The notes below the pieces were generated by a model. That model made no database searches. It saw only the letters and a list, made by a program, of their open reading frames with translations, and was not told where the DNA came from. A stretch of 64,000 bases of DNA from Asterias rubens (lineage: Eukaryota): the NCBI RefSeq assembly GCF_902459465.1, contig NC_047065.1:18972001-19036000 (forward strand). Reading direction: 5' to 3'. This document shows, one piece after another, positions 1 to 59,704 of the stretch (position 1 is its first letter; every line of letters begins with the position of its first letter). The position numbers and the translations under genes are program-made.

Positions 1-3000
1 GGTCCCTTTATCCATAAGTTTCTTGAAGGTGAAGAGTTGACCCAAGTACGTGGTTAGAATGGTAATCTGTGTGGGTTCGTATCCTTGATGCAACAAGTAC
101 CTACACATTTCAACAAGAACCTCGGCTTCATACTGGTTGGACTTGGTTTTGTTGTCATCACCTTCATCTTCAAACTGGTTGTGATCAATGAAAAACATGT
201 TATGCGCCACCCCTTTGATGTCATCGAAACCCTTCACTGATTCATCGTCATAAAGATTGTTATAAAAATGTTTCTTCATGAGTTTTGAGATTTCAGGACG
301 CATACGATGCTGGTGGTTCAGTGTTTGACAAGGCACGCCATTGTTGATCATCCTTTCAAACAAGGAGGTATCCATATTGAAGACCTTAGCCAGGCGATAG
401 ACTGTTGGGTTTGGCTTCAGCTGCTGATGATCTCCAATCAGAATGAGATGCTGACATTTTGCAGTCAGGGCGGTGATGATATGAGCTTCAAGAACTTCAG
501 CAGCCTCTTCCACTATCACGATACGGGGATGTAGAAGCTGCAACACAGAACGAAGCCTTGCTGCACCCGTTGTCGTCATCCCAATCACGCTTGCCTCTTT
601 GAGGATCAGTACATCATCTTGATCGTTCACACTCTGCATTTGCTTTGAAAGCTTTTCATACTTCTGGCGATACTCGTCTAGTTTATCCTCGTGTATTTCG
701 GTATACCTCTTGGCCCAAAGCCTATACAGACGCCACCGATCCCAAATCATAAGAGACCAAATACTCCTGACTTGATTCGCCTCTTCATCTGTCATACAAT
801 CTTGCTTTTGAAGTTCTGCTTGTGGTGTAGAGCACTGATTCTTCCCACATCGTTTGTTGCACCTGGAACCATAAGCTACTATCTTCTCAAAGAGGTTATC
901 TTCTTCGGTCTGACTAGGTTGGTTGCGAGACCCCCTGGGGTCAATGCGACGTTCCTGTTGAATTCGGTAACCCTCATCTTCCACGTAGATTCGGTTCTCT
1001 CTCCCTTGAGCTTGTCCCCGCTGAGGTGGCTGTAAGGGAACATCAACAGTTGAATCAACCACATTCAACCACCATAACAGGTTTGTATTTGGATGGAATC
1101 TGTTATCACCCCTGAGCCAAGGCATGATGAGATCTCTGTTGTTCTCTCTACTACAGTAGCCTTCGAGTTCAAAAAAGTGAAGGATATTAGTTTTAGCCAG
1201 ATCTAGTTTCAATAGAGTGGCCTTAACATTTTCTTCTGCTTGATGTAGTTCTCGCTTTAGGAAGCCAACCGGTACACTCTGTTGACGACGTCTGTGTGGT
1301 CTATCTCGTCTTATTTGAGAAAGGTTCTTCGACTTAAGAACTTCGCTGCTACTGCGTCCACCAACACGGATGACGTTTTCCTCCCCGAAGGCAACAATTC
1401 CTTCAAGAAACTGGTCGAGGGCGTGGTTTGTGTAGCATACAACAAGAATTGGTGACTCGGTGTTATCTTCCTCCTCGTCTGATAATGACGACTCACTTTC
1501 ATCTGAATCAGGCGATGAAGACCTTGTCCATGGTTTATTGCCTAGAAGTATCTGGATAATCTTGAGACCAATGTACGTCTTCCCTGTTCCTGGTGGACCT
1601 TGGATGACAGCAAATTCATTCGTTAATGCTGCCTGCAGAGCTACCTTCTGTGATTGGTCAAGATGTAGAGTTTCAGCTGCGGGCCACTTGATTGGCCGTA
1701 AAATCGGAACTCTGGCAGCCTTTAGGCCTATGCGAGAGGCGCGTGCGCTTAAATATCGAGCGGTATGTGAGCTGATCTGAGCGATTTGGTCTGTTAAACC
1801 AAAGAGATCATCAATAGATGACCGGCGACTTGTTGGAACAAGTGAACGAAGATCATAAGTGATCTCTTCATTGCCTTCTAGGTATGCTGGTGGATCAACA
1901 TCCGATGAAACTTCAACAATAAACTTCTTAAAAGGAAAAGTGCTTGGTGTCATCTGTTGTAGTCCCTGCAAGACGTGGCGGCATGCTTCAAAGTATGCTG
2001 ATGTTTCTGCCATGATGAAGGGACCGTTGGGAGCAGTGTTACCAATCTCGCTAAGAAAACGGATCTCCACTATGCCTTTCTGAAGATTATTGATGTCCCG
2101 ATTCTCTATTGTTGCGCCTAAAATAGTCTGGAACTTGTCTTTTGTAAGGCAAATGAAGGAGCCATATATTAATCGCTTACTAGATTCCCATCGAACGCGC
2201 TGCAGCCCATTCACATCGAACTGCAGCCTGTAAACAAAGCCGCTGTTGGTCAACTTTCCCTTGTCTATGATCCTCGCATTCCTGTAAATCCGAATATCCT
2301 GCAGACGGTTCTTGGTGTTCGATAGATATTCCGCGACCCCCTCCCGTAGAGGTGCTACAAAATCCTCTCTCAGCAACCTGAACTGCACATCAAGATAATG
2401 CTCCACGCTGTCATACCTCCCCTTTATAATATTCTTTCGCAGAAATGGCCTCGTAGGCTTTCGAATCTCTGGGCCGTCAGGAAAGATCGGAATGTCTCTA
2501 AAGTTATCCGGTGGTTGTCTTTCCCTGGCTTTCTCTCTTGCCGACTGCTGAGCCTTCTCCAAGTGGGTGAAAATGCCGCTTAGATGCTGTACCTGCTTCA
2601 TTAGTACACACTGCGGATCAAAGTCCTCATCGTCTAATGCCAGAGTCGTCACTATTTTATCTAGCAGAATCAAAACCACACCCACTTCCCCACAACTACT
2701 CGGTTTATGCTGTAAGAACACTGAAACCAACTTGAGAATCAGTTCGATTTCAGATGCGAGAGTGTCGGTAGTGGAGCTACCACAATCTGTAGTCTGAGAT
2801 TGTTTTGTGGTCAAACCAACTAGATACCTGGACATGTGCTTACTAAGGAAACTAGAGGAATCTACTATACTGAGTGCAACATTTAGATCTTCCCTAACTG
2901 CTATAACTGAATCTAAATTGCATATACGCGACAGAACTTGCAGCGTTAACGTAAATGCATCATCAGTAAATTGATTTTGCTCCAATAATGCTATGAACTC

Positions 3001-3208
3001 ATCCTTCCTACTCACAAACGTCTTGAGAATATCTGATGGATCCTCTTCAAGAAGGTTCTGAAGTGTCTCCTGCGGGACTGGTGGTGATGTTGTCTTCCGT
3101 TTTGCCTGAGGTTTGGATGGAGAAGTTAACGAATCATGACCACCTTCTCTCCCTTGCCGCCGGGTGTCATTCGTAACGCCATTGCCCGGGACGAAGGTTG
3201 AAGCATTA
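1..3208 (-). CDS. ZNFX1: ZNFX1-like gene A, large coding exon (partial; continues beyond the left edge): N-terminal helical domain and SF1 helicase
   Basis: Manual translation. Acceptor tttaacAG ends at 3209; the frame has codon starts at multiples of 3 and is open to base 1. It contains NFRDIPIFP, YLDVQFRLLREDF, Walker A QGPPGTGKT (about 1580-1605), VVCYTNHALDQFLEG, VEEAAEVLEAH, LIGDHQQL, QHRMRPEIS and QITILTTYLGQ. It is missing from the ORF track because no stop falls inside the window. Confidence 0.93.
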
Positions 3209-3428
3209 CTGTTAAAGAAAAAATAAATAATGACGTTAACATCTTGTCTATGGCGACATGCAAAGTGAGGGTCTCAAAAATTGTACTTTTGCATAATCTT
3301 TTTGTTCGCATCAGAACCTCGTAACAAATGTTCCCCTGCCTGTAATAAAACTTTTTTGCAAGGCAGAACGAGAGTGAGAAGGACAGAAGGTCGAGCAGAA
3401 GACGGAATTGCAAGAATAATAACATTAG

Positions 3429-3535
3429 TAGGGTTTGAAACTTTGCTTGGTGGAAGTACGATATAGAAAGGTTTGCGGTAACACCATGTAATGACTATCT
3501 CTAATGAGTTGGGGTGGTTCTGAAAAGAACCGTTT
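3429..3535. repeat. Partial copy of the palindromic MITE family also found at 15290-15485
   Basis: Shares gtttgaaactttgc...aaaggtttgcggtaacaccatgtaatgactatctct...ggttctgaaaagaaccgtt with 15258-15360. Confidence 0.75.
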
Positions 3536-3686: not shown

Positions 3687-4393
3687 CTTTCTTTGGTCTT
3701 CCCGAGGTACCGATTTGTTGGCTGCGTGAATCTGAACCCGCGTTCTCTGCCGGAATCGCTTCCATCGCTCGCCCTGTGGGTGCCGGAGAACTGCCCCTCA
3801 CCCTGCCGGGGTCTACCGTTAAAAGGTGCACCCCTTCTTCCGTATCCACCTCGCTGTTGTTCAGATGACTTATCACCATGTTCGTCATTGCACCTCGTTC
3901 TGTTACGGTCAGCATCACAGTGACGAACGGCACTGATGGGTCTCCCGCGACTTGTAAATGGTTGATGACCTATTCCTCTTCCACGGTCATTTCCAGAGTG
4001 ACCCCTTTCTCTTCCTCGGTCACCTCCAGAGTAACCCCTTCCTCGGTCACCTCCAGAGTAACCCCTTCCTCTTCCACGGTCAGCTTCAGAGTAAACCCTC
4101 CCTCTTCCACGTTCAGCTCCAGAGTAACCCCTTCCTCTTCCACGGTCAGCTTCAGAGTAAACCCTCCCTCTTCCACGTTCAGCTCCAGAGTAACCCCTTC
4201 CTCTTCCACGTTCAGCCCCTCCAAATGTGACGTTGGGACCACGATGATGGAATCCTCTATAACCTCTCGATGGATCAGTGCCTCTTGTTTTTGGCCGAGC
4301 TCCACCGACTATACCCCCTCTATCATCAAGCTGGCCATAGGCATGATTATTGGGGTCGTATCCGTAGAAGCCATCCTCCAATGGGCTGGCCAT
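3687..4393 (-). CDS. ZNFX1: ZNFX1-like gene A, first coding exon (RG/RGY-rich disordered N-terminus)
   Basis: ATG at 4393, 2 nt after acceptor ttccAG (4396-4397). Donor AG|GTAAGT at 3686. Length 707 nt (phase 2); AG+T joins in frame to the exon at 3208. Confidence 0.85.
3975..4215 (-). repeat. Coding tandem repeat of about 30 nt (RGRGRGYSGAE / RGRGRVYSEAD)
   Basis: About 8 degenerate units visible in both DNA and protein, including two near-identical 60-nt blocks. Confidence 0.9.
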
Positions 4394-19129: not shown

Positions 19130-19326
19130 ATGGATGGAAATCCGTTCCGTGTGCGAGGGCGAGCCGATCACAACGGCGGTCAAGACAGACGATTCAACGG
19201 CCAAGGTAATCGACACGATGCAGATAATCCTGATCGTAACCGCAGACAGGACAATGGGCGTGGTCAAGGAAGAGGACAAGGGCGTGGTCAAGGGCGTGGT
19301 CAAGGAAGAGGACAAGGCTATGCGAG
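19130..19326 (+). CDS. ZNFX1: ZNFX1 gene B, first coding exon (GRGQ repeats)
   Basis: Acceptor ttgcAG at 19121-19122 after a poly-T tract; ATG at 19130; (GRGQ)x5; donor GAG|GTCAGA at 19327. Phase 2; AG+A joins in frame to 20425. Confidence 0.82.
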
Positions 19327-20424: not shown

Positions 20425-23400
20425 AAATGATCATCACAACCAACTTGGTCGCCCAGACGGTCCACCACGACAGCAAACCAATCAGAGAGAACGCCCCTCG
20501 AGACCTCCAGGGTTTAAGAAGCTTGAATCTTTGCTGTCAGTCGATCCCGCAGTGGTAGTACAAGAGTTGAATTCATTTGGTAAAGGGTTCGAGAGTTTAC
20601 TGAACGAACGGGCGATACGTCGTGACATGATGGCTCTACTCATCGAGGTGCTGGGTAAAGTATGCGATTGTACTACCTCACCACAGTCTGTCATTAGGGT
20701 CCTGACTATTGTAGTTGACGTTGACTTTCTATCCCGAAACCTCACCAAATACATCTATAGCATGATGACTGAATATGACCCCAGGTTCTTAGCTAAAACA
20801 TCAGATCAGATCAACTTGATACTGAAGCTGATGAAATCTCTTGTGCAGCGAGTCAAGACTAGCATCAAAGACGTACAGGTTGTGCTGACCGTCATTGAGG
20901 CAGTTGCAAAGGGTCTAGGAATGAGAGGGTTCCCTTTGAGCGAAGATGCTGAAGTATTGCTAGTGGAGCTGCAGGCATTGTCAGCGCAGATTCAAGAAGA
21001 ACTTGCCCTGAAGAACACACGTCAAAGAAGAGGACAAGAAGGCCCACCGCCAAATGACTTCAGGGAGATCCCAATTTTCCCAAGTATTGAGGAAATCAAC
21101 ACCAATGCTGAGCCATACTTGAGACATAATGTGGTGAAAGGACGATACGAGGATCTTAACCATTACCTAGATGTTCAGTTCCGTCTGTTGCGACAGGACT
21201 TCCTGGAGCCTTTGAGGCTCGGGATCGCTCAGTATCTACTTCTTCAGGATGAGAATGGAAAGAAGAGCAAGGTGAAAGACATTCGAATTTACCATGACGT
21301 GAGGGTTCACTTTCCTATCTGCACCAACGAGGGGATAACTCACCGTGTTAGCTTCGATGTCACCAAGTTTGGGAAGATAAGGTGGCAGGCCACAAAGCGG
21401 CTAACCTACGGTGCATTGGTTTGCTTGTCCAATGATGACTTCAAGACGGTAATTGTCTTTGCAACAGTCGCCAACAGGAAACCAGAGCACCTGCAAGAGG
21501 GTTTGGTAGACTTAAGATTTCAAGACATGGGGCAGCTTGCAGATATTAAATCCTCAGATAAGTTCATCATGGCCGAGTCCTCTGCTTACTTTGAGGCTTA
21601 CCGTCATGTCTTGGAGGGTCTTCAAGAAGTAAGAGGCAACAGCCTACCACTGCAACGCTACATCATTGACGTCTCCAGCGATGTGAATCCCCCGCGGTAT
21701 CTTCACAGAAACAGAGCTGCAACCTATGACCTGTCACCATTGACAGCTGAAAGTCCGGAGGAAGAAGTTGTCTTGGGGCTTCGCAGTCTAAATTTGAGGA
21801 GGACAAATCCTCGAGCAAAGGCTGTGCAGGTTCTGAGTGAAGCAAGCTGGCCACGAGCAGATGTTTTGCAGTTCGATGAATCACAGATGGAAGCGGTTCG
21901 GGCAGCTCTCACGCAGGAAATAGCCGTCATTCAGGGGCCGCCTGGTACAGGTAAAACATACATCGGCCTGAAGATTGTGCGGGCTCTGTTGCACAACATG
22001 TCTGTGTGGAACGAGGAAGAAGATGAGAGTCCAATCCTAGTGGTTTGCTATACAAACCACGCCCTTGATCAATTTCTTGAAGGCATATTAGAGTTCAATC
22101 AAAACATCGTCCGGGTCGGAGGAAGGAGTAACAGCGAGGACATGAAGAACAAGAATCTGAACTTCTTAAAGAGAGAGGAGCGCCGGCGCAGGAAAGTCCA
22201 GGTAGCAATTCATCGTCGAACAACAGAGGTGCTAAGGGAAATGTACACTCTTCGCCAGCACATGGAGGCATCTCAACATAAAGTAGAGAAAAGTATGAAT
22301 GGGATAATCAGTGAATTGTACCTGGAACAGTTTATGACGAAAGATCACTACGCAACTCTCATGGTTGACTTGGGTTATCCACTTCAGTCGTCTCGTATAT
22401 TAGAATGGTTGGGTGTAGGTGGTGGTAACTTTCGTGTTGCAGGGAATGATCAAGGTCTAGCTGCTGCTGCTGCGATGTGGCAAACAGAACCAGATGAAGC
22501 GGAGCAACAAGAAGATGATGAGATAGAAGTAGATGAAGAGGCAGACATCTTAGCTGAGCAACGGATTCTTGATGATGACGATGATGACCTCTTCAACTTA
22601 GATCAGGACGCCCCGCAAGAAAATCACGTGGTCCTTGATTTAAATGATCTTGACAGGGAAGAAGGTAACGTCATCAATCCAGAACAGTGGCAGTACCAGA
22701 GCAAACAAAAGAAGAGGATGAAGAGAATGCTTCAACATAATCTTCGCAAACCTGACAGAATGACAAAAGAACAAGCTGAAAGAATTCATAATGTGTGGAC
22801 AGTGAGACTTATTGAAGACAGATGGCAGCTTTACCGCTACTGGGTGTCGGAGTACTGCAGCTCGGAGCGCAGAAGGATGGAAGTGATTCAAGGGAAATAT
22901 GAAAATCTCTCCCAGGAACTAAGGGAGGTTCGAGTAGAGGAGGACCTGGCAATTCTCCGTCGTGCTAATGTTATCGGTATGACAACAACAGGAGCTGCAA
23001 AGCACAGGAATGTTCTCCATCGTGTTGGCCCTAAGATTGTGGTTGTTGAGGAGGCAGCTGAAGTCTTGGAATCACATATTATAACGACACTGAGTGCGGA
23101 ATGTCAGCATCTTATACTCATAGGTGATCACCAGCAACTGAGACCCAACCCAACTGTCTACCGGCTGGCGAAAGACTTCAACCTTGACATTTCACTTTTT
23201 GAGAGGATGCTTAAAAATGGTGTCCCCTGTAAGACACTAGTTGAGCAGCACCGAATGCGCCCTGAGATCTCGTCAATAATGAAAAACCACTTCTACTCAA
23301 ATCTTCTTGACCATGGCGTTGTCAAAAATTATCCCAAGGTTGCAGGAGTCAGATCTGATGTGTTTTTCTTGGACCATGATATTGCCGAGCAGCATGTGGA

Positions 23401-39500: not shown

Positions 39501-39673
39501 ACTATGCGTTACTTCAGAGGGAGCCGTTTTTAACAACAACATTAATATTCTTTATCCCCGATGCAACGTCAGGTTAGTTTTACAGTGACAGATGAAACGG
39601 TGAAACTTAAATGGATTTTAGGTCTGCTTGAATTTAAAATTGATTTTTATATGATTTTTTTCTCTTCAGAATA

Positions 39674-40200
39674 ATGGAGGTTGATGCGGATGATCGAAGT
39701 GGTCACGAGAAACAGGCTGGTTCCAATAACCTCCATCGAGCTTCGCAAAGCCACGAAGTCAGACAGACGTCTTCCAGGGGGCGAGGGGCCGCACGAACGT
39801 CTGCCAGTGGGCGAGGGACTGCACGAACGTCTTCCAGGGGGGAGGGACTGCACGAAGAGCAAAATGGAAGATCACACGGTGCTTTTGGTGGTCGGTCTCA
39901 AATGAACTCTTCGACTCGACAGACACATGTAACCCCAACTGACACCTCAAGTAGAAGTACCAACATCGACAGGGGTGCAAGTGTTAGTCACCCTGGAGGT
40001 GCTCGACCCAAAGAGGGTAGACATTCTTGGAGGAGGGGAGAAAACCTGAAAAGTGGTTTTAAAAGCCACGAAAGATCCTCGAATCCGACAGGATGTACGG
40101 CTGATAGTGCAGGGCCGGAAAGTGAAAAATCGCAGCGAGGCAGATCTAAGGGGTCGCGGGACGGCGGCTTTAGGCGGACAGATAGAGCGAGCTACCAGGG
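39674..40200 (+). CDS. ZNFX1: Gene C first coding exon, copy 2
   Basis: Acceptor at 39668-39669, ATG at 39674, donor GG|GTAAGT at 40201. Phase 2; GG+T joins to 42315. Confidence 0.8.
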
Positions 40201-40462
40201 GTAAGTCACTCTAGGATTTCACTCGATGCTAAAGGCACTGGACACCTTTGGTAATTGTCTAGTCTTCTAACTTTGTGTGTATCTCAACATATACATAAAA
40301 CACCAAACCTGTTAAAATTTTGACTCAATATTGGTCGCCGAAGTTGCGAGAGAATAATGACAGAAAAAACATTCTTGTTATTGTGTGCTTTCAGATGCTT
40401 TGAAATCGGCTGAGGGCTCTTATCAAATTCGAACATTTTAGTGAGAAATTACTCCTTTTTAA

Positions 40463-42314: not shown

Positions 42315-45300
42315 TGATCCAAGCGGGGGTTATCAAAGATGGCGGAGAAATCAAAGTGACGCTCCTCAAACCTCAGGGCGGTACCAAGGTCAAGTTCAAG
42401 TTCAGCGCAGGTCGACTGTGCGTCCGATCCCAGAGGCAGAATTGCAGAAACTATTAAGAGAACAACCAATAAACATACTGTCTTGTCTAGTGAGTAAGAA
42501 GGGTGAATGGTCATCTTTATTAAACCAAAACATTTTCAGTGATGATCTAGTTATCCTTACACTGCGTGTGTTATACTGCATTTGTGATATAGACTCTGTT
42601 CAGGATGCCAGATTAAACTTAAATATAATATTTGATCTGCTAGCATCCTCTTGCTTTCTCAGCAAACATTTGTCGAGGTATTTAGTTTCTGTAACCGAGA
42701 AGATGCAACTGGGTGAAGATGGTAATGAAAGCATAGGTCTTAATGTTAACATGATGTTGAAAGTACTGAGTGTATACTTGCAGCATAAACCAAATGGTTA
42801 TGGAGAGATGGCAGTAGTATTGATTCTTCTTGATAAGTTGACGTCGTCACCAGCATTTGTTAGTCAGGCTTATTTGATGATTGAGGTGCAGAAACTAAAA
42901 GAAAGTTTTCATATCCTGGAAGAGTCTCAGCAAACCAAGCAAACAGTGAAGGTTAAACCACCACCAAACAACTTCAGAGATATTCCAATCTTCCCCGACA
43001 GCTCAGAAATTAGGACACCGACGCAGCCATTCCTACGAAAGAACATCATTCATGGAAGATATCAAGACGTGGAGCATTATCTTGATGTGCAGTTCAGGTT
43101 GCTGAGAGAGGACTTTGTGGCACCGCTACGGGAAGGTATCATAGAGTTTCTCTCTGTGACAAACAGTCGCCATCAAGATATTCGGGTGTACCGCAATGTC
43201 ACTATTCAAAGTAAGAAGATGGGGAGACGTAGTCTTCAGTACACCGTGAAGTTGGACGTCAACGGTCTCAAACAGATTAACTGGGGAAAGCGTTTCCTAT
43301 ATGGTTCATTTGTCTGCCTTACACAAGACAAGTTCCAGCACATCATCTGTGCGTCTGTGGCAGATAGGAACGAAAAGGACTTGAAAAAAGGTCTTGTTGA
43401 TGTTTGTTTTCTTACCGAGTGTAGTAGCACGCCTACAGGTACCTTTGTCATGGTTGAATCAGTTGCTTTCTTTGAACCCTATCGACACGTCTTACTAGGG
43501 CTACAACGAATGATCAGCGACGATTTCCCCTTTGAAAGGTACATCGTGAATGTTTTCTCTTTTGTTAGAACACCCAAGTATCTGAGTGGAGAGTGCTCTG
43601 ATGTGTATGACCTACGATCATTGGTTGTTGAAACTGATCAGGTCTTTGAAGATGAGGGTCTGACTGAAACCTTCGTAAATGCAACCTGTGTTTCGATTTT
43701 AGATCCACAAAGTTGGCCGACTGCAGAGGCCTTACATCTTGATGAGTCACAGAAGGCAGCTGTGCAGGCAGCATTGACGAAGGAGTTTGCCATCATCCAA
43801 GGTCCACCAGGAACGGGGAAGACTTACATTGGTCTCAAAATCATCGAATTACTTCTGTACAATTTACTTACGACAACAGATGCATCTCCGATTCTTGTGG
43901 TGTGCTACACGAACCATGCTCTCGACCAGTTTTTGGAGGGAGTTCTACGTTTTGGTGAGAGGAATCTGGTTCGTGTTGGACGCCAAAGCAAAAGTGAAGT
44001 GCTTAAATCTTTTAAGTTTTCGTCTCTCAAAAAACAGCTTGGAAGACATCACCCTATGAAGGACATACAGAAAGAAAAAGAACTCAGGGCAATCACATCG
44101 AGGCTACAATATACACTTTTAAGTGTAGCTTTTGCTAAAACTGTCGTATATAAAGCAGAGACACTACAACCATTCATGACTGATGACACACAAAGAACAC
44201 TTTTTGAAAAATTCAAGACTGAGAAGGATCCAACAGCAAACCTTCTGAACTGGCTGTTTGTAGTTGATATCGAAGGTGAAACAGATCGACCAGATTGTTT
44301 AGATTCAAATCAAGACCAGGATAAGTTTATAGACGTAGAAGATGAAAGCAATCGGATACAGCAAGAACGCCAAGCCGAGGACGAAGCCGGCTTCAGTTTT
44401 TTTGACGCGCAACGTAAGCAACAGGAACATTCCGTTTTAAGACGAAATGCAGCATACAGCAGTGAATGCGAAAAGCGATGTGGTAATTCAGGATATAATC
44501 TTCAGGAAGAACTTCAGAAGGATGACATGATGTCTGAAACAGAAGTTTCTAGAGTCACAAATGTGTGGAGTCTGACGTTAAGCGACCGTTGGCGGCTTTA
44601 CCGACTCTGGGTGAACAGGTACATTGAGGAGCAGGAGGAGTTGCTCTCGAAATATCGCAGGAGTTATGACAGCCTTTCAAAGGAAGTTGAAACTATAAAT
44701 GCAAGCGTCGATTTAGAAGTTCTCTCAAAAGCAAGGGTAATTGGAATGACGACAACAGGTGCGGCCAGATGTCAGTCGATGTTGCAGCTTCTTGGTCCCC
44801 GTATCGTGATAGTGGAAGAGGCTGCTGAAGTTCTTGAAGCTCATATCATCACCACCCTGACTGCAAAGTGTCAGCATCTCATTATGATTGGAGATCATCA
44901 GCAGTTGAAGCCAAACCCAACAGTCTATCGCCTGGCTAAGGTCTTCAAAATGGATACCTCTTTGTTTGAACGGATGATCAACAATGGCGTACCTTGTCAA
45001 ACACTAACCCATCAGCATCGTATGCGTCCTGAAATCTCAAAACTCATGAAGAAACATTTTTATAAGAATCTTCATGACGATGAGTCAGTGAAGGGTTTCG
45101 ATGACATCAAAGGAGTGGCACATAACATGTTTTTCATTGATCATACTAAGCTTGAAGATGGATCAGGCGATGACAACAAAACCAAATCCAACCATCATGA
45201 GGCTGAGGTCCTTGTCGAGTTGTGTAGGTACTTGTTGCATCAAGGATACCGGCCCAAACAGATTACCATTCTAACCACGTACTTGGGTCAACTCTCCACC

Positions 45301-47325
45301 TTCAAGAAACTTATGGATAAAGAGACCTTTGAGGGAGTTCGGGTGTCTGTGGTTGACAATTTCCAGGGAGAAGAAAATGACATCATACTTTTGTCTTTGG
45401 TTCGAAGCAACAAAGAGGGCTCCATTGGGTTCCTGAAGACTTCGAACCGTGTATGTGTGGCCTTGTCTAGAGCTCGCATGGGTTTCTATTGCATAGGTAA
45501 CGGCACCATCTTGAAGAAAACACAGATCTGGCAGGATATCATTGGCACTCTTGAAGCTGAGAATCAAGTTGGTTCGACACTGCAGCTTGTCTGTCAAAAT
45601 CACCCTGGCACAGTGGCTGAAGTTGCCTCAGCGGAAGACTTCAGATTCAAGGTTCCGCTGGGAGGTTGCGGGAGGCCGTGTGAGTTCACGCTTGCGTGTG
45701 GCCACCGTTGTGAATCATCCTGCCACCCGTACGACTGTGATCATACCACGTACAAGTGCAGAGTTCGATGCACACAGTTATGCAAAAGGGGCGAACATTC
45801 TCGTAACATTGAATGCTTTGAATCTGACAACCCCTGTAAAGAGATGGTGTTGAAGTTAACACCCAAGTGCGGTCATGAATCACAAGTAATGTGTGACGAT
45901 TTTGAGTCGGCCGATTGCACCGTTCCATGTACTAAGAAAATCACATGTGGACATTCATGTACAAACCTATGTTGGCAAGAGTGCACATTAGCATCATCAT
46001 GTACAGTAAAGGTTACGAGAACCTTAAGACAATGTCGTCATAAATTTGTCACGGAATGCTCCGGAAAAAAATATTTGGCAGAATGTCCTCATGAATGTGA
46101 CAAAATATTGAGCTGTGGACACAAATGTCCAAACAAATGCGGCAAGTCGTGTCCAAAAACAAAGCGGGATATAGTAGGCTGGCGTGTATCTGAGTACAAG
46201 AATTGCAATGATTTCTGCACAGAAAGGTGTGGAGATCAATTATCTTGTGGACATACATGTCCTAATAAATGTGGCGAACCATGTCCAAAAGCAGAAGTTG
46301 ATCCAAACTTTGGGGAATATCTTGAGCTTGAAGATTACCAGATTCCACTTATATGTACAGTCATGGTGAGCAAGAGGCTTCCTAGGTGTGGTCACACTGT
46401 TATTGAGGAGTGTTACCGGGATGTGAATTTGAGATCTTGCACAGTGATTTGTAACAAGGAGTTGCCGTGTGGTCATCGATGTAGTCTGACATGCAGCGAA
46501 CCATGTACATGCTTACTAAGTGTCAAGAAGACGCTACAACCTTGTGGCCATTCTTTCCAGATTCCCTGCAACAAGACGGACGATCTTAACAAATGTACCA
46601 AGAAATGTCCGAAGTTATTAACATGTGGGCATCGGTGTCCTAATAACTGTGGAGATCCATGCCCAGGAGGAGCTGACCATAACCCAAGCTCAGCTCAAAT
46701 TAACAATGTAGTAGCAATTGTTTGTCAGCGTTCGGTAATGAAGAAACTACCTGGATGTGGCCACAGTTTGGCCTTGCCTTGTTTCAAAGACGTCGAGTCA
46801 GTTGCATGCTTAGAAAAGTGCACTGAAATTCTACCATGTAAACACAATTGCCCCAACAGGTGCGGCGAGCCATGCCCAACAACTACCGATGAGGGTGACG
46901 ATTACAGTTTGTCTGACAACAGACAACCCTTTGCAATGAAATGCCAAGAAGGTGTCACCAAAAAGCTAGTTTGTGGCCACATCGTAAGAATGCCATGCTT
47001 TCAGAACAACAAATTGCTGTTATGCCCCAAACCCTGTGAGAACATTCTGTCATGTGGTCACCGATGCTCCAGAAAATGCGGCGAGGCGTGTCTTAGTGGA
47101 GGTCACCATGCAGAGTCGGAGAGCGAAAACGAAGGGGAGACACTCTGTTCTGGTGCGGATGCTGAGGTAGAACTGCCATCGTGGAAATGCCAAGAGTCTG
47201 TCTACAAAATGTTACCTAAATGTGGTCATTTTGTAAAACTGCCATGCTGCAAAAAAGCAACAACTGCGATATGTCCAGAAAGTTGCCAAAGGGTTTTTCC
47301 TTGTGGTCACAAGTGCCCCAAATAG
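42315..47325 (+). CDS. ZNFX1: ZNFX1-like gene C, large coding exon up to an in-frame TAG (helicase and about 17 zinc-finger units)
   Basis: Acceptor tttacAG at 42313-42314, in frame with ORF 42418-47325. All SF1 motifs present (QGPPGTGKT, VEEAAEV, IGDHQQL, VDNFQGEEND, VALSRAR). About 1845 aa when spliced to copy 2. Confidence 0.93.
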
Positions 47326-48372
47326 TGCGGAGAAGTGTGTCTGACTCCAGAAGAATGCAAAGCAGTGGTTAAGAAGAGCCTTCCGCTTTGTGGCCACGTT
47401 GTTGAAACTTGGTGTCAAAGGAACATCGACTTAATTAAGTGCACAGAAGACTGTGAAAAGGTGTTACCCTGTGGTCATGTATGTTCCAACACCTGCAGCA
47501 GGCCTTGCAAAGCTGAATGTTCAGAACCATGCAGCCATCGACTACGTCGATGTGGTCATAGATGTCCTGGTGAATGCGGTGTTTGCTTAGCATCTTCATA
47601 TCACGAGCTATGTGACAGTAAATGTGAGAAACCGCTCATCTGCGGCCACATCTGCAAAAGTGCATGCGGAAAATGTTCAGAGGACTGCGATGATTGTGAA
47701 CCTAGCTCTACGACGAAAGAGAGTCTCGATACGGGCTCATCATCAGCGGATGCCGAGGACTTTCAACAGTGCAGACATAACACTAAAAAGAGTCAACTTT
47801 TCCCACATGCCTGTACCTTACCTTGCAGTAAAAAATTGCAGACACGTGCGCACAACTGCAATCATTTTTGTATTGGTGTCTGCAACGAGCCATGCCCTCC
47901 ATTTTGTTTAACTTGCAACAAAAATAAAGTAGTTGCATCTTTACCCCAGCAAACTTGTCGTCGAGGTGACACGTTCATCTACCTCCCAGACTGCAACCAC
48001 CTCTGTGAGACACGGTTTCTCGACAAAATGATGGCAGGTTTCAGAAGTTCATCTGACTGCGTTCAGGTACGTTCTCCAACATGTCCCAAATGTGACCGGC
48101 CAATACGCAAGTGTCAGCGATATCAAGACTTACTTAAGGTTATCGATGAGTCAATTGACTCGGCGAGAAAACAAGACGCAAGAAGTAAACCGAGGAACAC
48201 CACTCGTGACGTCAGCAGATCCGCCATTGTTGTCGGAAGTTGGATGAGATGTCCAAAAAGTCACGTGTTCAATCACAAACGGACTACAAGCTCGCATGAC
48301 AACAGAGACAACAAAATTGTACTTTGTCAAATGTGTAGGCAACTTTTTTCTAACATCTCACCCAGTACTTAG
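47326..48372 (+). CDS. ZNFX1: In-frame continuation of gene C past the TAG: about 6 more fingers, RING-like finger, degenerate RZ-like finger
   Basis: Same frame as 42418, with no further stop for about 348 codons. LPDCNHLC...CPKC and GSWMRCPKSH...CQMC. Whether it is translated is unknown. Confidence 0.7.
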   Translation, partial: CGEVCLTPEECKAVVKKSLPLCGHVVETWCQRNIDLIKCTEDCEKVLPCGHVCSNTCSRPCKAECSEPCSHRLRRCGHRCPGECGVCLASSYHELCDSKCEKPLICGHICKSACGKCSEDCDDCEPSSTTKESLDTGSSSADAEDFQQCRHNTKKSQLFPHACTLPCSKKLQTRAHNCNHFCIGVCNEPCPPFCLTCNKNKVVASLPQQTCRRGDTFIYLPDCNHLCETRFLDKMMAGFRSSSDCVQVRSPTCPKCDRPIRKCQRYQDLLKVIDESIDSARKQDARSKPRNTTRDVSRSAIVVGSWMRCPKSHVFNHKRTTSSHDNRDNKIVLCQMCRQLFSNISPST

Positions 48373-49862: not shown

Positions 49863-49866
49863 TTAA

Positions 49867-51212: not shown

Positions 51213-51712
51213 NNNNNNNNNNNNNNNNNNNNNNNNNNNNNNNNNNNNNNNNNNNNNNNNNNNNNNNNNNNNNNNNNNNNNNNNNNNNNNNNNNNNNNNN
51301 NNNNNNNNNNNNNNNNNNNNNNNNNNNNNNNNNNNNNNNNNNNNNNNNNNNNNNNNNNNNNNNNNNNNNNNNNNNNNNNNNNNNNNNNNNNNNNNNNNNN
51401 NNNNNNNNNNNNNNNNNNNNNNNNNNNNNNNNNNNNNNNNNNNNNNNNNNNNNNNNNNNNNNNNNNNNNNNNNNNNNNNNNNNNNNNNNNNNNNNNNNNN
51501 NNNNNNNNNNNNNNNNNNNNNNNNNNNNNNNNNNNNNNNNNNNNNNNNNNNNNNNNNNNNNNNNNNNNNNNNNNNNNNNNNNNNNNNNNNNNNNNNNNNN
51601 NNNNNNNNNNNNNNNNNNNNNNNNNNNNNNNNNNNNNNNNNNNNNNNNNNNNNNNNNNNNNNNNNNNNNNNNNNNNNNNNNNNNNNNNNNNNNNNNNNNN
51701 NNNNNNNNNNNN
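51213..51712. other. Assembly gap (500 N)
   Basis: Run of exactly 500 N, a placeholder length. Confidence 1.
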
Positions 51713-52083
51713 ATTCGATTTGGTATGTCAAAGATCAGTCTTCTCAATTGGTGTATCTCAACAGCATGCATAAAATAACAAACCTGTGAAATTTTGAGCT
51801 CTATTGGTCGTCGAAGTTGCGAGATAATAATGAAAGAAAAAAACACCCTTGTCACACGAAGTTGTGTGCGTTAAGATGGTTGATTTCGAGACCTCAAATT
51901 CTAAATCTGAGGTCTCAAAATCAAATTCGTTGAAAATTACTTCTTTCTCGAAAACTGTGGCACTTCAGAGGGAGCCGTTTCTCACAATGTTTTTTACCAT
52001 CAACTTCTCCCCATTACCCGTCACCAAGTAAGGTTTTAGGCTAATAATTTTTTTGAGCTAATTACCACTAGTGTCCACTGCCT
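51713..52083. mobile_element. K1 MITE abutting the gap
   Basis: K1 body ending ccactagtgtccactgcct|ttaa. Confidence 0.8.
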
Positions 52084-52682
52084 TTAAGGTTTACAAAAAG
52101 CATCAACTTTTACATGACTAGTATTGGAATGTCAAACTATCTTTTTCTATCAAAAGAAAATGAAATACACTGTATATACGAAGCTATTTCCGAAGGTATT
52201 AGTTTTCTCTTTAAACAGTTCAGTAGACTAAAGGGTAATCTTTTTGATGTTGTGTTAAAGAAACTATAAGAAATTTCCTTGTTTTGTAAACAAATAATGC
52301 AAAAGTTTCACCTATAACTTCTCGATACAAGTTCTTGTATTGTATAATACCTGTTTTTGCAAAGTGATCTTACGATGAAAAGCCAATGTAAAAATAACAT
52401 TCATTACATAATGACCATGATCTTCGTTGTACAACCATACCACGCGTTACCTTAACAGTGCGAATAGTGCCCCACTCTCTATTTTCGCATTGAGTGTTGC
52501 TCCAATAAGAGCTATCAATTACCTTTAAATCAAGATGAAGGCTAACCTTGAATAAGTACGTATACGATCACGTGACCATCACGTGACCCATCACAGATCC
52601 ATTATTTGAACCAATTACGTAAATCTTAACTATAGAAAAAAGCTCAAGATCTGAGCTAAATAACAACATAAAATCATCCTTC

Positions 52683-53042: not shown

Positions 53043-54786
53043 TCATTCAAAGTATTCCATATCATCACTTGAAGATTCTGATTGACAGTCAGAAAAGCAA
53101 TCAGGGCAAAGTGCGCAATCTTCTAAATCATCTGATGCTTTGTCTTGACAGAACACATGACCTTCCGGACACCTCATCCACCCACCAACAGCAAAAGAAA
53201 GCTTAACAAATCGGTCTTCGTTACAGTTCTCTCTGGCTATATCCACTGACTCTCTGATTGTCTGAAGGACGTTTTCATAACGTGGACATGTACGGATTGG
53301 TGTCTGGCATTTAGGGCACAGAGCTGGTTGGATCTGCACACAGCCTGTTCCAGAGGTCTGGAAACCTGCAAACATTTCATCAAGAAACTGTGTTTCACAA
53401 AGATGTCTACAGTCTTTAAGGTAGATGAACGTTTCCTTTGGACGGATAGGTCCCGGAGGATATTTGTCAGCGATAAACTGTTTGTGACAGATACGACAAA
53501 CAGGTGGACAGGGTTCACCACAAACACCAAGACATAAATGATTGCAACGAAGTCTTTGGATGCATGGAAGGTTACAGGAAGTGGTATGTGTTTTGCGCTG
53601 ATGCTTACATTTGAGACTCTGCGTAGATATTTGAGGTAATCCCCTTGGCGACTTGTTGCAAAATTTGTGTGTTGGACAGACGTCATGTCCGCACAATTCC
53701 GAGCACCTATGTCCACAAAGAAGAATAGCGCCACAATTGTTATTGCAGAATGTATGTGTTCTACCAGGTCCTGCGCACGAACCACATGAACCGGGACATT
53801 TGTGACCACAACGAAGTACATGAATGCACGGTTCCTGGCAACTAGTGATAGCTGTACAATCAGATGCTTCCCAGCATGGCAATTTGATAACATGACCGCA
53901 TGGCGGAAGGGTCTTTTCCACACACTCGTCACACTGTTCTGACTCAAGACACGTCTCACCACATTCATTTGGGCATTTATGACCACACTTCATTATCTTC
54001 TCACATGGTTTTGAACATTCAGCGGACCCTGCTTTCTTGTGGCACGGAAGATTCATAAAATGGAAACACTCAGGTAGCTGCTTGTATACGGTGACTTGAC
54101 ATTTCTGTTTTACAAATTCGTTTTCATTCATTTCCTCTTCATCGTCACTGGATGTACATTCTTCGTTCGGGCACGGCTCCCCACATTTGTTCTCGCATTG
54201 ATGACCACATGAAAGAATCTTCTCACAGGGCTTCGGGCATACCAGTGATTCAACGCTTTTATAGCATGGACTTTCTATGACGTGACCGCAAAAAGGTATC
54301 TTTTTGTTCACAAACTGTTCTGACATAGAGGTCATCTTGTTCAGACGACCTGTTGCCATCATCATCCCAGTCACAGTAAGTTTCGTTCTTCTTTCGAGTG
54401 CTCTCTGTTGGGTCGTCTTCGCCATCCGCCGGGCAGGGTTCACAACATTTATTGGAACATGAATGGCCACATGGTAACATTTTCTGACATTTCTTCACAC
54501 ATTGATAGGAGTTGACATCTTGGTAGCAAGGGAGCCGAGCAGAATGTTCACAAGATGGCAGCTTTCTGTTAACTCTCAGTTTGCATTTGCAGGGGACGCC
54601 ACATTTATCTTTGCACCGGTGACCACATGATAACTCTTTGTTGCAGGTCTCTTTGCAAGTTAATGACGTAATATCAGCATGACATGGCACCGATTCAGTA
54701 TGATCACACCCAGGAAGCTTTTTATTTGTGATTTGGGTACACACCATAAACAGTATGCCGGCAACAATAATATAACAATAAACTTC
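53043..54786 (-). pseudogene. ZNFX1: Disrupted 3' part of gene D: zinc fingers, RING-like finger and RZ-like finger downstream of a TAA and across a frameshift
   Basis: ORF 54259-54747 is in the same frame as the main ORF. The finger pattern then continues in a different frame (ORF 53043-54470: NKKIPFCGH ... LKDCRHLC...CPKC ... GGWMRCPEGH...CPDC). Confidence 0.75.
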
Positions 54787-57700
54787 TTAGTGAAGCTGTA
54801 TGTATTCACCATAGGTTGGGTCCACTGTTTCCTTTGGGCACGGTTCGCCACATTTATTAGGACAGGGATTGCCGCAAGGTAATGACCGCTCACACTTCTC
54901 TTTGCAAAATGCTTCATAATGCCGCATAATCTTGGCGTCATCTAATCTTTCCCTTGTACAGGACATACCGCAGTACCGAGAGCAACGATGGCCACATTCC
55001 AACAACTTTTCACATAGATGACGCGGCGTGGAGTCGGGGTTCTTAGCACAATCCATCAGGACGTCATGGCCACACTTGGTAACGTGTTTAGAGACCTTGA
55101 CAGTACAGTAAGTAGTGCATTTAGCACCACACGCCCCTTTACATGCATGTCCACATGACAGTGTTCTAGGACATGGTTCTGTACAAGTGATTGACTCATA
55201 CCAACGACATTGAACCTGGATAACATGACCACACTCTGGCATCGATATAGAAACCTTGACAATACAAGTAGAACACGAATCTCCGCACGCCTTCCTACAT
55301 GGATGGCCACATGGCAATGATCTAGGACATGGTTCGGTACAAGTAACTGAATCAAACATTTCACATTCAACCTGAATAACATGACCACACTTTGGCATCA
55401 GTTTCTGTAGATTTCTCGAGCACGGTTCGCATTTCAAGTGGCATTTTAGAGGACACATGTGTTTCCTTCTACACATTTTTGAGCAGGGCTCTTTACATTC
55501 GTACTTTTCGTGGCATAAATCAAAGGGATGGCAGTGTAATTTGCATATGTGATTACATGGAAGCCTGTTTCCACATGGCTCGCCACAACCTCCGTCTTGA
55601 ACCTTCTCCTTGAAATCTCTGGCCGACGCTACCGCTGTTACTACTAAATGGTTTTGACAAACCAATGCAAGCGAGGAGCTAATTTTCTTCTCATCTTCAA
55701 GGGTTCTTAGTATGCTACTCCAGATAGAAGACTTTCTCAGGATGTTGGCGTTGCCAATACAGTAGAAACCCATGCGAGCTCTAGACAAGGCAACACAGAC
55801 ACGGTTTGAAGTCTTCAGGAACCCGATGGAGCCCTCTTCGTTGCTTCGAACCAAAGACAAAAGTATGATGTCATTTTCTTCTCCCTGGAAATTGTCAACC
55901 ACAGACACCCGAACTCCCTCAAAGGTCTCTTTATCCATGAGTTTCTTGAAGGTGAAGAGTTGACCCAAGTAGGTGGTTAGAATGGTAATCTGTTTGGGCC
56001 GGTATCCTTGATGTAACAAGTACCTACACAACTCGACAAGAACCTCCGCTTCATGCTGATTGGACTTGGTTTTGTTGTCATCACCCTCATCTTCAAACTG
56101 ATTGTGATCAATGAAAAACATGTTATGCGCCACCCCTTTGATGTCATCGAAACCCTTCACTGATTCATCGTCATAAAGATTGTTATAAAAATGTTTCTTC
56201 ATGAGTTTTGAGATTTCAGGACGCATACGATGCTGGTGGTTCAATGTTTGACAAGGCACGCCGTTGTTGACCATTCGTTCAAACAAAGAAGTATCCAAGT
56301 TGAAGCCCTTGGCCAGGCGATAGACTGTTGGGTTTGGTTTCAGATGCTGATGATCTCCAATCAGAATGAGATGCTGACATTTTGCAGTCAGAGCGGTGAT
56401 GATATGAGCTTCAAGAACTTCAGCGGCCTCTTCCACTATCACAATACGAGGACCAAGAAGCTTTAACATCGACTGACATCTGGCCGCACCTGTTGTAGTC
56501 ATTCCAATCACTCTTGCTTTTGAGAGAACTTCTAAATCGACGCTCGCCTTTATAGCTTCATATTCATTTGAAAGGCTGTCATAACTTATGCGGTAACCCG
56601 TCAGCATCTCCTCTTGCTCTTCAATGTACTTCTTAACCCAGAGTCTGTAAAGCCGCCAACGATCGCTTAACGTCAGACTCCATACATTTGTGACTCTAGA
56701 AGCTTCTCTATCGGACATCATGTCGTCCTTCTTAAGTTCTTCTTTTGGGGTGGTATCCAAATTCATACCACAGCGTTTCTCACACTCAATGCTGTATGCT
56801 GTAATTTCTTCTTCATCGTCAGAACTACTTGATTCATCTTCATCATCATCATCCTGTTTCTGTTTGCTGTCATCATCTACGCCAATGGACTTATCGTATA
56901 CTTCATAAGAATCTGTCGAGTCAACTACGTTCAGCCATTTCAGGAGGTTGGTTGTTGGTTCTCCTTGTCTCTTGATATTATTTTGAAAACCTGTTCGATT
57001 TTTGTCGCTCATGTAATAGATAAGCGTCTCGACTTTAAGTATGGCCGTTTTTGCACAAGCTACATCTGAAAGTGTAGATTGAATTTCCAATTTTGTTCGA
57101 TGCAGTTTTTTTTTAGCATTTTTTTCACGCTGTATTTGCTTCAACCTAAACTCCCTGGGAAGTTTCTTTTTTTCTTTGAGATTCTTTTCTCCCAATGCAT
57201 CACTTTTGCTTCGGCCTCCAACACGAACTAGGTTCTCCTCACCAAAATTTAAAACTCCCTCCAGAAACTGATCCAGCGCGTGGTTTGTATAGCACACCAC
57301 AAGAATTGGAGATGCATCTGGAGTTTTAGGTGTATTGAAGAGAAGTAATTCGATGATCTTGAGACCAATGTAAGTCTTCCCCGTTCCTGGTGGACCTTGG
57401 ATGATGGCAAACTCCTTCGTCAACGCTGCCTGCACAGCTGCCTTCTGTGACTCATCAAGATGTAAGGCCTCTGCAGTCGGCCAACTTTGTGGATCTAAAA
57501 TCGACACGAAGGCTGCATTTTCAAAGGTTTCAGTCAGACCCTCATCTTGAAAGACCTGATCAGTTTCAACAACCAATGGTCGTAGGTCATACACATCAGA
57601 GCAGTCTTCGCTCAGATACTTAGGTGTTCTAACATTAGATGAAACGTTCACAATATACCTTTCAAAAGGGAAGTTGTCACTATCCATCCGTTGTAGCCCT

Positions 57701-58933
57701 AGTAAGACGTGTCGATAGGGTTCAAAGAAAGAAACTGATTCAACCATGACAAAGGTACCGGTAGGCGCGTTACTAGACTCGGGAAGAAAACAAACATCAA
57801 CGAGACCTTTTTCCAAGTTCTCCGTATTCCTATCTGCCACAAACGCACATAACAAGCTCTTGAAGTTGTCTTTTGAAAGACAGACAAATGAACCGTATAT
57901 CAAACGGTTTTCCCAGTTGATCCGTCTGAGACTCTTGACATCTAACTTCAGGGTGTACTGAAGACTACGTCTCCCCATCTTCTTACTTTGAAAGGTGACA
58001 TTGCGGTACACCCGAATATCTTGATGGTGACTGTTTGCCACAGAGAGAAACTCTATGATACCTTCTCGTAGCGGTGCCACAAAGTCTTCTCTCAGCAACC
58101 TGAACTGCACATCAAGATAATGCTCGACATCTTGATATCTTCCCTTTATGATGTTCTTTCGTAAGAATGGCTTTGTTGGTTCCCAAATCTCTGAGCTGGT
58201 AGGGAATATTTTGATATCTCTGAAGTTAACTTGTGGCTTGTTCTCTATTTTTTGTTTTGTTTGACCTGACTCGGCGACAGAATGATAGCACTTCTTCAGT
58301 TTCTGTACCTGGATCATGTAATTCTGACCTTCGTGATCGATGTCAGTACAATCTACCAGGGAAACAGCCTTCTCGAGAAGAATCAGAACCACGCCCATTT
58401 CACCATAAATAATTGGCTTGTGTTCAAGGAATACTTTCAGCAATTTAAAAATCAATCTGATGTTGTTTGCAAGGGTTGCACCATGTCCACTGTCATGATC
58501 CCGTTGGTTTTGTGTGGACAAACCTACTAAGTATCTCGTCAAATGTCTACTGAGAAACCCTTCAGACTCTATCATACTGAATACCATATAAACATCTTGC
58601 TTTACTTTTGGATCTACACTTAAATCACAAATACACGACAAAACACGGAGTATTAACGTCATTATATTACTATTGAATGAGTCTAGATTTAAAAGTGCCA
58701 ACCATTCGTGTTTTCTGCTCAGAAGCTTGGAGAGAACTTCTTGTGGACTGGCCGTCAGCAGTGTCTTGAGTTCTTCCTCTGACATTGAGGGCGCCTTGGG
58801 AGTCTGCTTTACTTGAACTTGACCTGTGTATGTCCCTGAACCAGAACAAAAGTCGCTCTGTCCCCGACGCCATTTAGTTTCTTCTACAGGGGTTGGAGGA
58901 CTGTTCGGGCTCGAGGTTGTTGCACCACTGGAA
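54787..58933 (-). CDS. ZNFX1: ZNFX1-like gene D, large coding exon up to an in-frame TAA (helicase and about 9 zinc-finger units)
   Basis: Acceptor gtttcAG at 58934-58935, in frame with ORF 54787-58785. SF1 motifs present, with motif III reading GDHQHL. About 1551 aa spliced. Confidence 0.9.
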
Positions 58934-59195
58934 CTGAAACAATAAAAACATTTTTCGAATAATGAATTTGCTTACAGATATTTGTTTTGTTTTATGAAGA
59001 TTCTGCCCTAGTATTTGAATGGTAAAATAATAATGTTTTATATAGTACTTTCAGCTAGTTGTCGAAAATAGACAACAACATTTCTTTCAAACGTTTGCTC
59101 GCTTGAAATGCATTTCTTTGATAACGGAGTATTATTTTGTTTGCAATACTAAAAATAAATGACTAGGTTTATAAATGTTTCTATTATGAACTTAC

Positions 59196-59704
59196 CTGCT
59201 GTTCATCGGTTTACCTGGCCGTCTGAAGAAGTCACGACTATTAATCGTAGAAGTGTCCCTTAGCTGTTCCGTTGTCCTTTCTCCCTGACGCTCTGCTCTA
59301 CCACGTCGCCAGTTTGTCGTTTCCTGACGTTCTATTTGAGTCTTCGAGTCTCCTTCTTTCTCTAAATTGTTTCTCCTCCAAGACGTATTGCTTTCCTTGG
59401 GCCGAGCACCTTCACTTGCTTCCCTGTTGATGTTCCTCCAGGAGCCAGCAGCCGGAGCAGCGCTTTGATTACTTGATCGAGTCCACGTTAAGTTATTCCT
59501 GTAGGACTGTCCGCCAAAGACACCTCGAGACATTTTGTCGTTGCCCAAGGATCGTTCATGTCTTGTTTCTGGACCCAATGAATCGCTGTAAGCCGAACCG
59601 GTTTTGTGGATAAAAGGAGAAATGCGTCTGGTTCCCGACTGTTTGTGTTCTTGGTCGTCGACTGATGGACCGGTAGATTCATCTGAATCTGTGTCGGGAT
59701 CCAT
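59196..59704 (-). CDS. ZNFX1: Gene D first coding exon (disordered N-terminus)
   Basis: ATG at 59704, 2 nt after acceptor ctatAG. Donor AG|GTAAGT at 59195. Length 509 nt (phase 2); AG+T joins in frame to 58933. Confidence 0.85.

Follow-up and report, generated by a model that had tools for sequence, protein, structure and literature searches.

The window analysed here, a stretch of 64,000 nucleotides from the starfish Asterias rubens (LR699095.1:18972001-19036000), contains four genes of the ZNFX1 type, designated A (minus strand), B (plus), C (plus) and D (minus). These genes appear to belong to a tandem family in which one canonical ZNFX1 gene (B) stands beside an asterozoan lineage without the catalytic cysteine of the RZ finger (A, C and D), and which has evolved by duplication, gene conversion and truncation; we give this interpretation a probability of about 75%. 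Among its grounds are the separation of B from the other copies in domain content and phylogeny, a sharp local drop of four-fold-site divergence in the helicase core of A, C and D, and truncating lesions confined to the finger array of the reference copies.

Gene content and domain architecture

Long open reading frames (ORFs) of B, C and D matched the Pfam family PF25396 (the ZNFX1 domain, an N-terminal armadillo-type domain; E = 7.5e-34, 1.2e-26 and 2.2e-27, respectively) together with AAA_11 and AAA_12, the two halves of an Upf1-like superfamily 1 (SF1) helicase (E = 1e-28 to 1e-45), and the same families are recorded for the model of A. Helicase motifs I, III and VI were intact in all four genes (GPPGTGKT, IGDHQQL and VALSRAR, with IGDHQHL in D). 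Searches by tblastn with the window proteins recovered A, cut by the window start, as the fourth copy and no further ZNFX1-like piece in the 64 kb, and NCBI gene models exist for all four genes and map onto the window at 100% identity. The places and orientations given to the four genes in a first-pass annotation were thus upheld by Pfam, tblastn and the NCBI models. Its four-gene cluster held for the window only, as the locus comprises at least seven genes: three additional paralogs (P0123, P0208 and P0124) lie on the same chromosome at most ~60 kb past the window, which covers the left part of the cluster. The gene order is IPO5, A-, B+, C+, D-, and then, outside the window, P0123+, P0208+ and P0124+. 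A to D share a common plan, a short, repeat-bearing first exon rich in arginine and glycine (RG-rich) followed by one giant exon. The gene features were as follows (aa, amino acids; nt, nucleotides).

1..3210, minus strand: gene A, giant exon 2 (partial), P0127 aa 236-1305 at 100%, ZNFX1/armadillo domain and SF1 helicase
3689..4393, minus strand: gene A, exon 1, P0127 aa 1-235 at 100%
19130..19326, plus strand: gene B, exon 1, 65 aa plus 2 nt, RG-rich (GRGQ repeats), GT donor next
20425..25759, plus strand: gene B, exon 2, canonical ZNFX1 by Pfam, alignment and tree
33650..34207, plus strand: gene C, RG-rich exon copy 1 (33908-34207 in the NCBI model)
39671..40201, plus strand: gene C, RG-rich exon copy 2, P0125 aa 101-277 at 100%
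42316..47325, plus strand: gene C, giant exon to an in-frame TAG, as in the NCBI model
47326..48372, plus strand: gene C, post-TAG frame, 348 codons in the same frame
53046..54320, minus strand: gene D, distal frame after an 8-bp deletion, natural stop at 53046-53048
54321..54786, minus strand: gene D, stretch from the TAA to the 8-bp deletion, frame still open
54787..58935, minus strand: gene D, giant exon to a TAA at 54787-54789, P0121 at 100%
59198..59704, minus strand: gene D, exon 1, 169-aa disordered N-terminus, P0121 aa 1-169 at 100%
Beyond the window, plus strand: P0123, 2224 aa
Beyond the window, plus strand: P0208, 2803 aa, 19 fingers
Beyond the window, plus strand: P0124, 2009 aa plus a split 659-aa piece (P0206)

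Judged by its domains and phylogenetic position, gene B is the canonical ZNFX1 ortholog. Its two exons add up to exactly 1843 codons, the recorded product length, and its parts run in the order ZNFX1 domain, SF1 helicase, NFX1 fingers (six by regular expression, about seven by eye), Miz-like module, helical spacer of ~190 aa and RZ finger. Only B matched the RZ finger family PF20173 in Pfam (E = 2e-22, motif IGECGG). Human ZNFX1 is an SF1 RNA helicase and a bi-catalytic E3 ligase with a Miz-like domain, an RZ finger (C1860), a 1C plug helix and a rigid finger stalk (bioRxiv 10.1101/2025.10.14.682297). Alignment to ZNFX1 with human numbering indicated that B retains the cysteine equivalent to C1860, the acidic plug motif of insertion 1C, the Miz-like module (C-x-H...C-x2-C) and F1575, so that B resembles vertebrate ZNFX1 in domain order, in motifs I, III and VI and at each of these sites. 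The full canonical domain order earlier ascribed to B was therefore corroborated by Pfam, by alignment and by its place in the canonical echinoderm clade.

The other three genes depart from this architecture. Neither the catalytic cysteine nor the ubiquitin-binding helix of vertebrate ZNFX1 is present in A, C or D, and A, which extends 1862 nt beyond the window start, terminates inside the finger array (seven fingers by regular expression) and is devoid of both Miz-like and RZ modules. Exon 1 of A encodes a 235-aa RG-rich disordered N-terminus without a Pfam match; the earlier suggestion that A has an N-terminus of its own is right as to sequence but not as to kind, since an RG-rich exon 1 is present in A to D. 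With the pattern C-x(1,2)-H-x-C-x(2,4)-C-x(2,5)-C, 13 fingers were counted in C and 11 in D, compared with 6 in B and 4 in a mammalian (Pongo) ZNFX1. The Pfam zf-NF-X1 model gave no match at the thresholds used, including E≤10 for the tails and finger arrays of C and D, in which acidic loops lie between the fingers. In the alignment, the Miz-like C-x-H...C-x2-C-x2-P-I-R was kept in B, C and D, and the position of F1575 was occupied by F in B, L in C and Y in D. At the site of the RZ finger, C and D carry a knuckle, W-M-R-C-x3-H-V-F...C-x2-C (C-H-C-C), that was invariant in ten asteroid sequences and conserved in both starfish orders sampled, with no cysteine at the catalytic position, no ubiquitin-binding helix and no spacer. 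No RZ finger was found by Pfam in the C and D tails even at E≤10, and in the tails and finger arrays that threshold gave just two hits, both at chance level and to unrelated families (E ~0.25). The post-TAG frame of C holds the last four fingers, the Miz-like module and the RZ-derived knuckle, and is a separate 348-aa protein (P0203) at NCBI; the distal frame of D holds the last fingers and the same two modules. The C-termini of C and D had been described as remodelled, which is accurate for the lost RZ cysteine and the 11-13 fingers but reflects in part premature termination in this assembly.

A 1.37-kb duplication (33503-34868 and 39530-40850, 94.5% identity) bears the RG-rich first exon of C, and NCBI models splice the two exon copies in series. 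Both copies recur in the C ortholog of Asterias amurensis, where ~20 kb separates them, so the exon duplication predates the split of the two species. Tandem repeats occur in the first exons (33 nt x7.6 at 3973-4216; 30 nt x3-4 at 33743-33863 and 39767-39856) and encode RG-rich peptide repeats; the N-terminal tail probably varies in length.

Phylogeny and orthology

In a tree of 62 ZNFX1-like sequences, B belonged to the clade of canonical echinoderm ZNFX1, closest to genes from Acanthaster and Amphiura, with the sea urchins joining next. A, C and D were placed in a separate clade (support 99-100) with genes from Patiria, Acanthaster and one from Amphiura. On this phylogeny, A, C and D constitute a second, old asterozoan lineage beside canonical ZNFX1. 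In a second tree, from which conversion tracts had been removed, A grouped with the valvatid (Patiria, Acanthaster) genes (98/100), implying that the A lineage is older than the split of the two sampled starfish orders. C and the D group formed separate old lineages, older than the A. rubens/A. amurensis split, and P0123, P0124 and P0208 formed an A. rubens-only group against a single sampled A. amurensis gene (P0207), as recent duplicates would. Multiple ZNFX1 copies were also found in the sea urchin, amphioxus, crinoid and hemichordate sequences of the tree. The birth-and-death mode proposed in the first-pass annotation was borne out in part: there are tandem duplicates of several ages, lineage-specific gains and disrupted frames in the reference, but the gene count is too low.

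The independent assembly of A. amurensis contains collinear orthologs of A (P0204), C (P0202) and D (P0122), each ~95% nt identical to its A. rubens counterpart and in the same order, and IPO5 adjoins A in both species. The A. amurensis stretches compared contained no B-like match at ≥70% identity; the B ortholog presumably lies in an 11-kb stretch outside them, and the protein search returned neither it nor the protein of B itself.

Gene conversion and exchange of the 1C insertion

Two tracts of the helicase core were far more alike among A, C and D than the remainder of these genes, and the 1C insertion of D broke its orthology.

42970..43997, plus strand: conversion tract 1 in C (armadillo end, RecA1, insertion 1B), 88% nt identical to D 58227..57200
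44439..45519, plus strand: conversion tract 2 in C (end of RecA1, RecA2), 89% identical to D 56813..55733 and 90% to A 1-594
56450..57400 (approximate bounds), minus strand: 1C regulatory insertion of D, not orthologous to 1C of A. amurensis D

Divergence at four-fold sites was 0.14 in tract 1 compared with 0.6 in its flanks. Over both core tracts, C and D differed at 38/231 four-fold sites (0.16), against 48/87 (0.55) in the N-terminus, 1C insertion and fingers (p=3e-11). For A-C and A-D, the drop was restricted to the RecA2 tract (0.20-0.21 versus 0.60-0.67 elsewhere, p 1e-8 to 1e-10), while B-C four-fold sites were saturated all along, with no significant difference. Segment trees collapsed in the RecA2 tract, and tract edges were sharp. 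As four-fold divergence is 3-4 times lower in the core, the likeness of the helicases is largely concerted evolution, and purifying selection alone is insufficient to account for the similar helicase core.

Comparison of D with its A. amurensis ortholog gave a dS of 0.03-0.07 over most of the length and ~0.5 in the 1C insertion, with four-fold differences at 13/29 sites in 1C and 2/100 in the fingers. For this segment, A. amurensis D was near-identical to A. rubens P0123 (3/51 four-fold differences) and grouped with P0123 and P0124 of A. rubens in the segment tree. Since the ortholog pair breaks there and A. amurensis D matches P0123, the 1C cassette was replaced in one species after the split. 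The picture of a conserved helicase with diversified ends was thus correct in that the N-terminus, 1C insertion and fingers vary, but the four-fold sites indicate that the likeness of the core stems largely from gene conversion. Such a pattern of conserved helicase and variable ends in paralog arrays can arise by conversion, which matters for dN/dS and phylogeny of these families.

Selection between Asterias species

Overall dN/dS against A. amurensis was ~0.18 for A, 0.36 for C and 0.44 for D. For C and D pooled by domain, the ratio of non-synonymous to synonymous differences (pN/pS) was 0.55 in the fingers and ~0.25 in the core (count difference p=0.0015); in D alone, the non-orthologous 1C block reached 0.66. 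Ratios >1 were limited to small windows with very few changes. Diversifying selection on the fingers, as the first-pass annotation had envisaged, was not supported, the finger value being raised yet below 1; the sequences are compatible with relaxed constraint on the finger stalk, or with constraint and adaptation acting together.

Truncating lesions and read evidence

Half of the RZ-less copies (C, D and P0124, 3/6) were lesioned in the reference, in every case in the finger array. In C, AAG is changed to TAG at 47323-47325, inside the ninth of its 13 regular-expression fingers (CGHKCPK*CGEVC). In A. amurensis, the corresponding codon of the ortholog P0202, a full-length protein of 2345 aa, is AAG (Lys), and a single high-scoring segment pair spanning the TAG (42328-48369) was 95.7% identical to P0202 and ended at the same natural stop, with no additional lesion in the 348 codons after the TAG. 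D bears two lesions: AAA is changed to TAA at 54787-54789 in an inter-finger loop, where A. amurensis has AAA and the paralog P0208 has Lys, and, 470 nt past the TAA, DNA alignment revealed a frame-shifting 8-bp deletion between 54320 and 54319. The last 425 codons of D retained 96.7% aa identity to aa 1731-2155 of A. amurensis P0122, with the same stop, and the A. amurensis orthologs of both C and D were intact and full length. In P0124, a 1-nt frameshift was located in an A-rich run, GAAATAAAT (L004 16780-16900; LR699095.1 ~19.0976 Mb), amid near-identical finger cassettes, the remainder being the separate 659-aa protein P0206 at NCBI; a long-read homopolymer error is a likely cause of this frameshift. 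For C, D and P0124, NCBI offers models that are cut short or divided into two proteins and need cautious use.

Reads mapped to D formed fragmentary contigs that resolve TAA and GAA versions of the stop codon, and neither allele frequencies nor splicing. The TAA was kept in a contig of run X3 that differed from the reference at 28/648 positions, and GAA occupied the codon in contigs of X1 (the best DNA run) and X18 (an RNA-labelled run). No run mapped to D had an insertion at the 8-bp site, and D contigs were present in RNA-labelled runs. On this evidence, a real but unfixed TAA in D is the probable reading, unless near-identical copies differ at this codon. A small intron around the TAA was considered and rejected: the A. 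amurensis ortholog and P0208 read through the region with Lys, and the reads contained no spliced joint.

Alternative explanations

Misassembly of C and D, or of A and D, from haplotypes or assembly duplicates of a single gene would leave a window much like this one, and it was a check named in the first-pass annotation. The assembly gap between C and D and the variant contigs ~96% identical over the D region in the best DNA run would fit such an error. Nonetheless, C and D share only ~60% aa identity, A shares ~54% with either, synonymous sites outside the conversion tracts are saturated, and A. amurensis has a separate, collinear ortholog for each of A, C and D; we consider a misassembly of this kind almost certainly wrong. 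Strong purifying selection on the motor with fast or diversifying evolution elsewhere, and no conversion, agrees with the lowest pN/pS in the helicase (0.17-0.33) and 0.55 in the fingers. Purifying selection on the protein does not, however, lower four-fold divergence 3-4 fold, nor is any such effect seen between B and C, and neither the sharp tract edges nor the broken orthology of the 1C insertion in D would be expected from it, which makes selection without conversion very improbable.

The lesions allow two further explanations. C and D may be pseudogenes on their way out, with only A, B and perhaps some distal copies functional in A. rubens. The premature stops, at which the NCBI models end, cost C 348 codons and D ~570, including the Miz-like module, D has the 8-bp deletion in addition, and pN/pS after the TAG of C is 0.72 (5 synonymous and 14 non-synonymous changes). 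Against this stand helicase parts with all motifs intact, a pN/pS of 0.32-0.44 upstream of the stops, the absence of more lesions in 348 (C) and ~580 (D) downstream codons, stop-free GAA alleles or copies in two runs, and the intact A. amurensis orthologs, so that general decay of C and D seems unlikely. The stops and frameshifts could also be assembly or polishing errors in paralog-rich repeats, with C, D and P0124 really intact: three of six RZ-less copies are struck, always in the repetitive array, the single-nucleotide loss of P0124 in its A-rich run is typical of long reads, and reads from paralogs can mislead polishing. For C and D, though, the stops are A>T substitutions and not homopolymer indels, the TAA recurs in the divergent X3 contig, and no run restores the missing 8 bp; error as the common source of the lesions is accordingly quite unlikely.

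Several observations weigh against the tandem family with an asterozoan RZ-less lineage as we describe it. Five sequences with long branches and no Pfam RZ match (P0135, P0137, P0139, P0152 and P0181, from a crinoid, two hemichordates and Lingula) joined the RZ-less clade at 92-93; the subfamily may far predate echinoderms, or these sequences may have been drawn together by long-branch attraction after independent RZ losses. No domain had a pN/pS >1 (pooled range 0.17-0.56). RNA coverage of D was thin, with 27 raw reads in X23 that were mostly 95-99% alike and probably came from a relative. A 61-nt probe centred on the TAG of C, with two sampled words, matched no run and is uninformative either way, and taking the runs for independent individuals is our inference, since the run organisms are coded. 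Finally, the AlphaFold2 model of the D tail had a predicted local distance difference test score of 67, and Foldseek against the PDB returned nothing at ≤0.001 (best E 0.41); the top ranks were E3 modules (RCR, RING, RBR, U-box), with an RCR E3 best and none significant, and any E3 activity of the C and D tails is putative.

Putative function and comparison with known systems

The array appears to evolve in three modes: duplication at several ages; conversion that homogenizes the two helicase-core tracts among A, C and D, never B, and swaps the auto-inhibitory 1C cassette; and truncating lesions in the finger array, as in C, D and P0124 of the reference. By homology with human ZNFX1, the proteins may act as RNA-binding helicases in antiviral defence or RNA surveillance, the kind of role that the first-pass annotation had proposed for the locus. 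On that view, RZ-less copies would be at most one-step, Miz-type E3 ligases, and truncation would deprive the C and D alleles of any E3 module.

A role of the RZ-less paralogs in germline or small-RNA silencing, in the manner of Caenorhabditis elegans ZNFX-1 and Schizosaccharomyces pombe Hrr1, and not in antiviral immunity, is a possibility that we take seriously without favouring it. RG/RGG-rich N-terminal exons are typical of granule-forming RNA-binding proteins, and the loss of the RZ E3 site speaks against the ubiquitin-signalling mode of mammalian ZNFX1; on the other hand, fast turnover, truncations and tandem expansion would be more typical of defence loci. ZNFX-1 and Hrr1, compared here by description only, are likewise SF1 helicases with NFX1-type fingers and suggest an RZ-independent mode, which may hold for A, C and D as well; to our knowledge, E3 activity has never been demonstrated for either. 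Unlike these, A, C and D have their origin within Ambulacraria, in a ZNFX1-like ancestor, and thus any likeness would be convergent.

Mammalian ZNFX1 is a single, strongly constrained gene, the loss of which leads to severe immunodeficiency, whereas B has at least six divergent paralogs beside it in tandem. Among the top-ranked papers, a set that did not include the metazoan ZNFX1 survey reportedly made by Blasi et al. in 2022, nothing was found linking ZNFX1 with starfish or sea urchins. Multi-copy ZNFX1 in invertebrates is already on record, with 11 copies noted in the earthworm Eisenia andrei (PMC7253469) and three genes in Aplysia (PMC9334734). As far as could be judged, these reports count copies, with no description of a subfamily without the RZ cysteine, of core conversion, of 1C exchange or of truncations specific to alleles or species. 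Three features are, to the best of our knowledge, new: an asterozoan subfamily in which the RZ catalytic cysteine is missing and the finger stalk doubled, helicase-core conversion together with 1C exchange, and truncated reference alleles.

The locus resembles tandem immune arrays (vertebrate TRIM, MHC-linked families, plant NLR, sea-urchin 185/333) in its mixed-age members, conversion tracts, variable modules beside a conserved engine and truncated copies; it differs in protein family and in having pN/pS <1 in every domain. We propose, as a speculation unlikely to be right, that the asterozoan subfamily without the RZ site is a modular receptor array in which the helicase engine is kept alike by conversion, the auto-inhibitory 1C plug cassette and the doubled, acidic-looped stalk are exchanged among copies and diversified, and truncated alleles segregate as regulators or decoys. 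If true, this would be an innate-immune diversification strategy new for SF1 helicases. Recent structural work gives the helicase, 1C plug, finger stalk, Miz-like domain and RZ finger of ZNFX1 distinct roles. Natural variants of these modules stand here side by side: a canonical gene, copies with the RZ cysteine gone and the knuckle kept, a stalk of about twice the length, a gene without an E3 end, and alleles cut before it.

Assembly gap, repeats and intergenic features

The features outside the genes were as follows.

51213..51712, no strand: assembly gap (N run), intergenic, between the convergent 3' ends of C (48372) and D (53046)
Dispersed repeat copies: 7714-8060, 10964-11278, 30258-30634, 33043-33348, 39243-39536, 49480-49867, 51720-52088 and 61069-61351

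The gap has no effect on genes A to D. No coding frame crosses it, and tblastn found no ZNFX1-like coding sequence between the stops of C and D. Its flanks are collinear and equally oriented in A. amurensis and enclose ~7.7 kb there, with no gene called, compared with 1.1 kb here. The dispersed repeat, ~310-390 bp long with eight copies in the window (75-90% identity), is also found at the A. amurensis locus, and the copy at 51720-52088 directly abuts the right side of the gap.

Upstream of D, two direct copies of a 441-bp sequence are 100% identical (60696-61136 and 63560-64000). They are separated by 2.9 kb, the window ends within the second, and the pair may reflect a very young duplication or an artefact of assembly. 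The D-upstream segment 60843-63092 recurs at 96% identity downstream of P0123 (L002 20771-22941). Intergenic ORFs at 12.7-14.6 kb and 60.6-63.8 kb had no Pfam match. Those between A and B (12703-14609, 187-269 aa, on both strands) looked retroelement-like by eye, and 13800-14609 might be a retrotransposon reverse-transcriptase remnant, an unconfirmed guess by eye. A Harbinger-type transposase gene (THAP, HTH_Tnp_4 and DDE_Tnp_4) was located within the cluster at L002 2800-4365, ~5.6 kb upstream of P0123.

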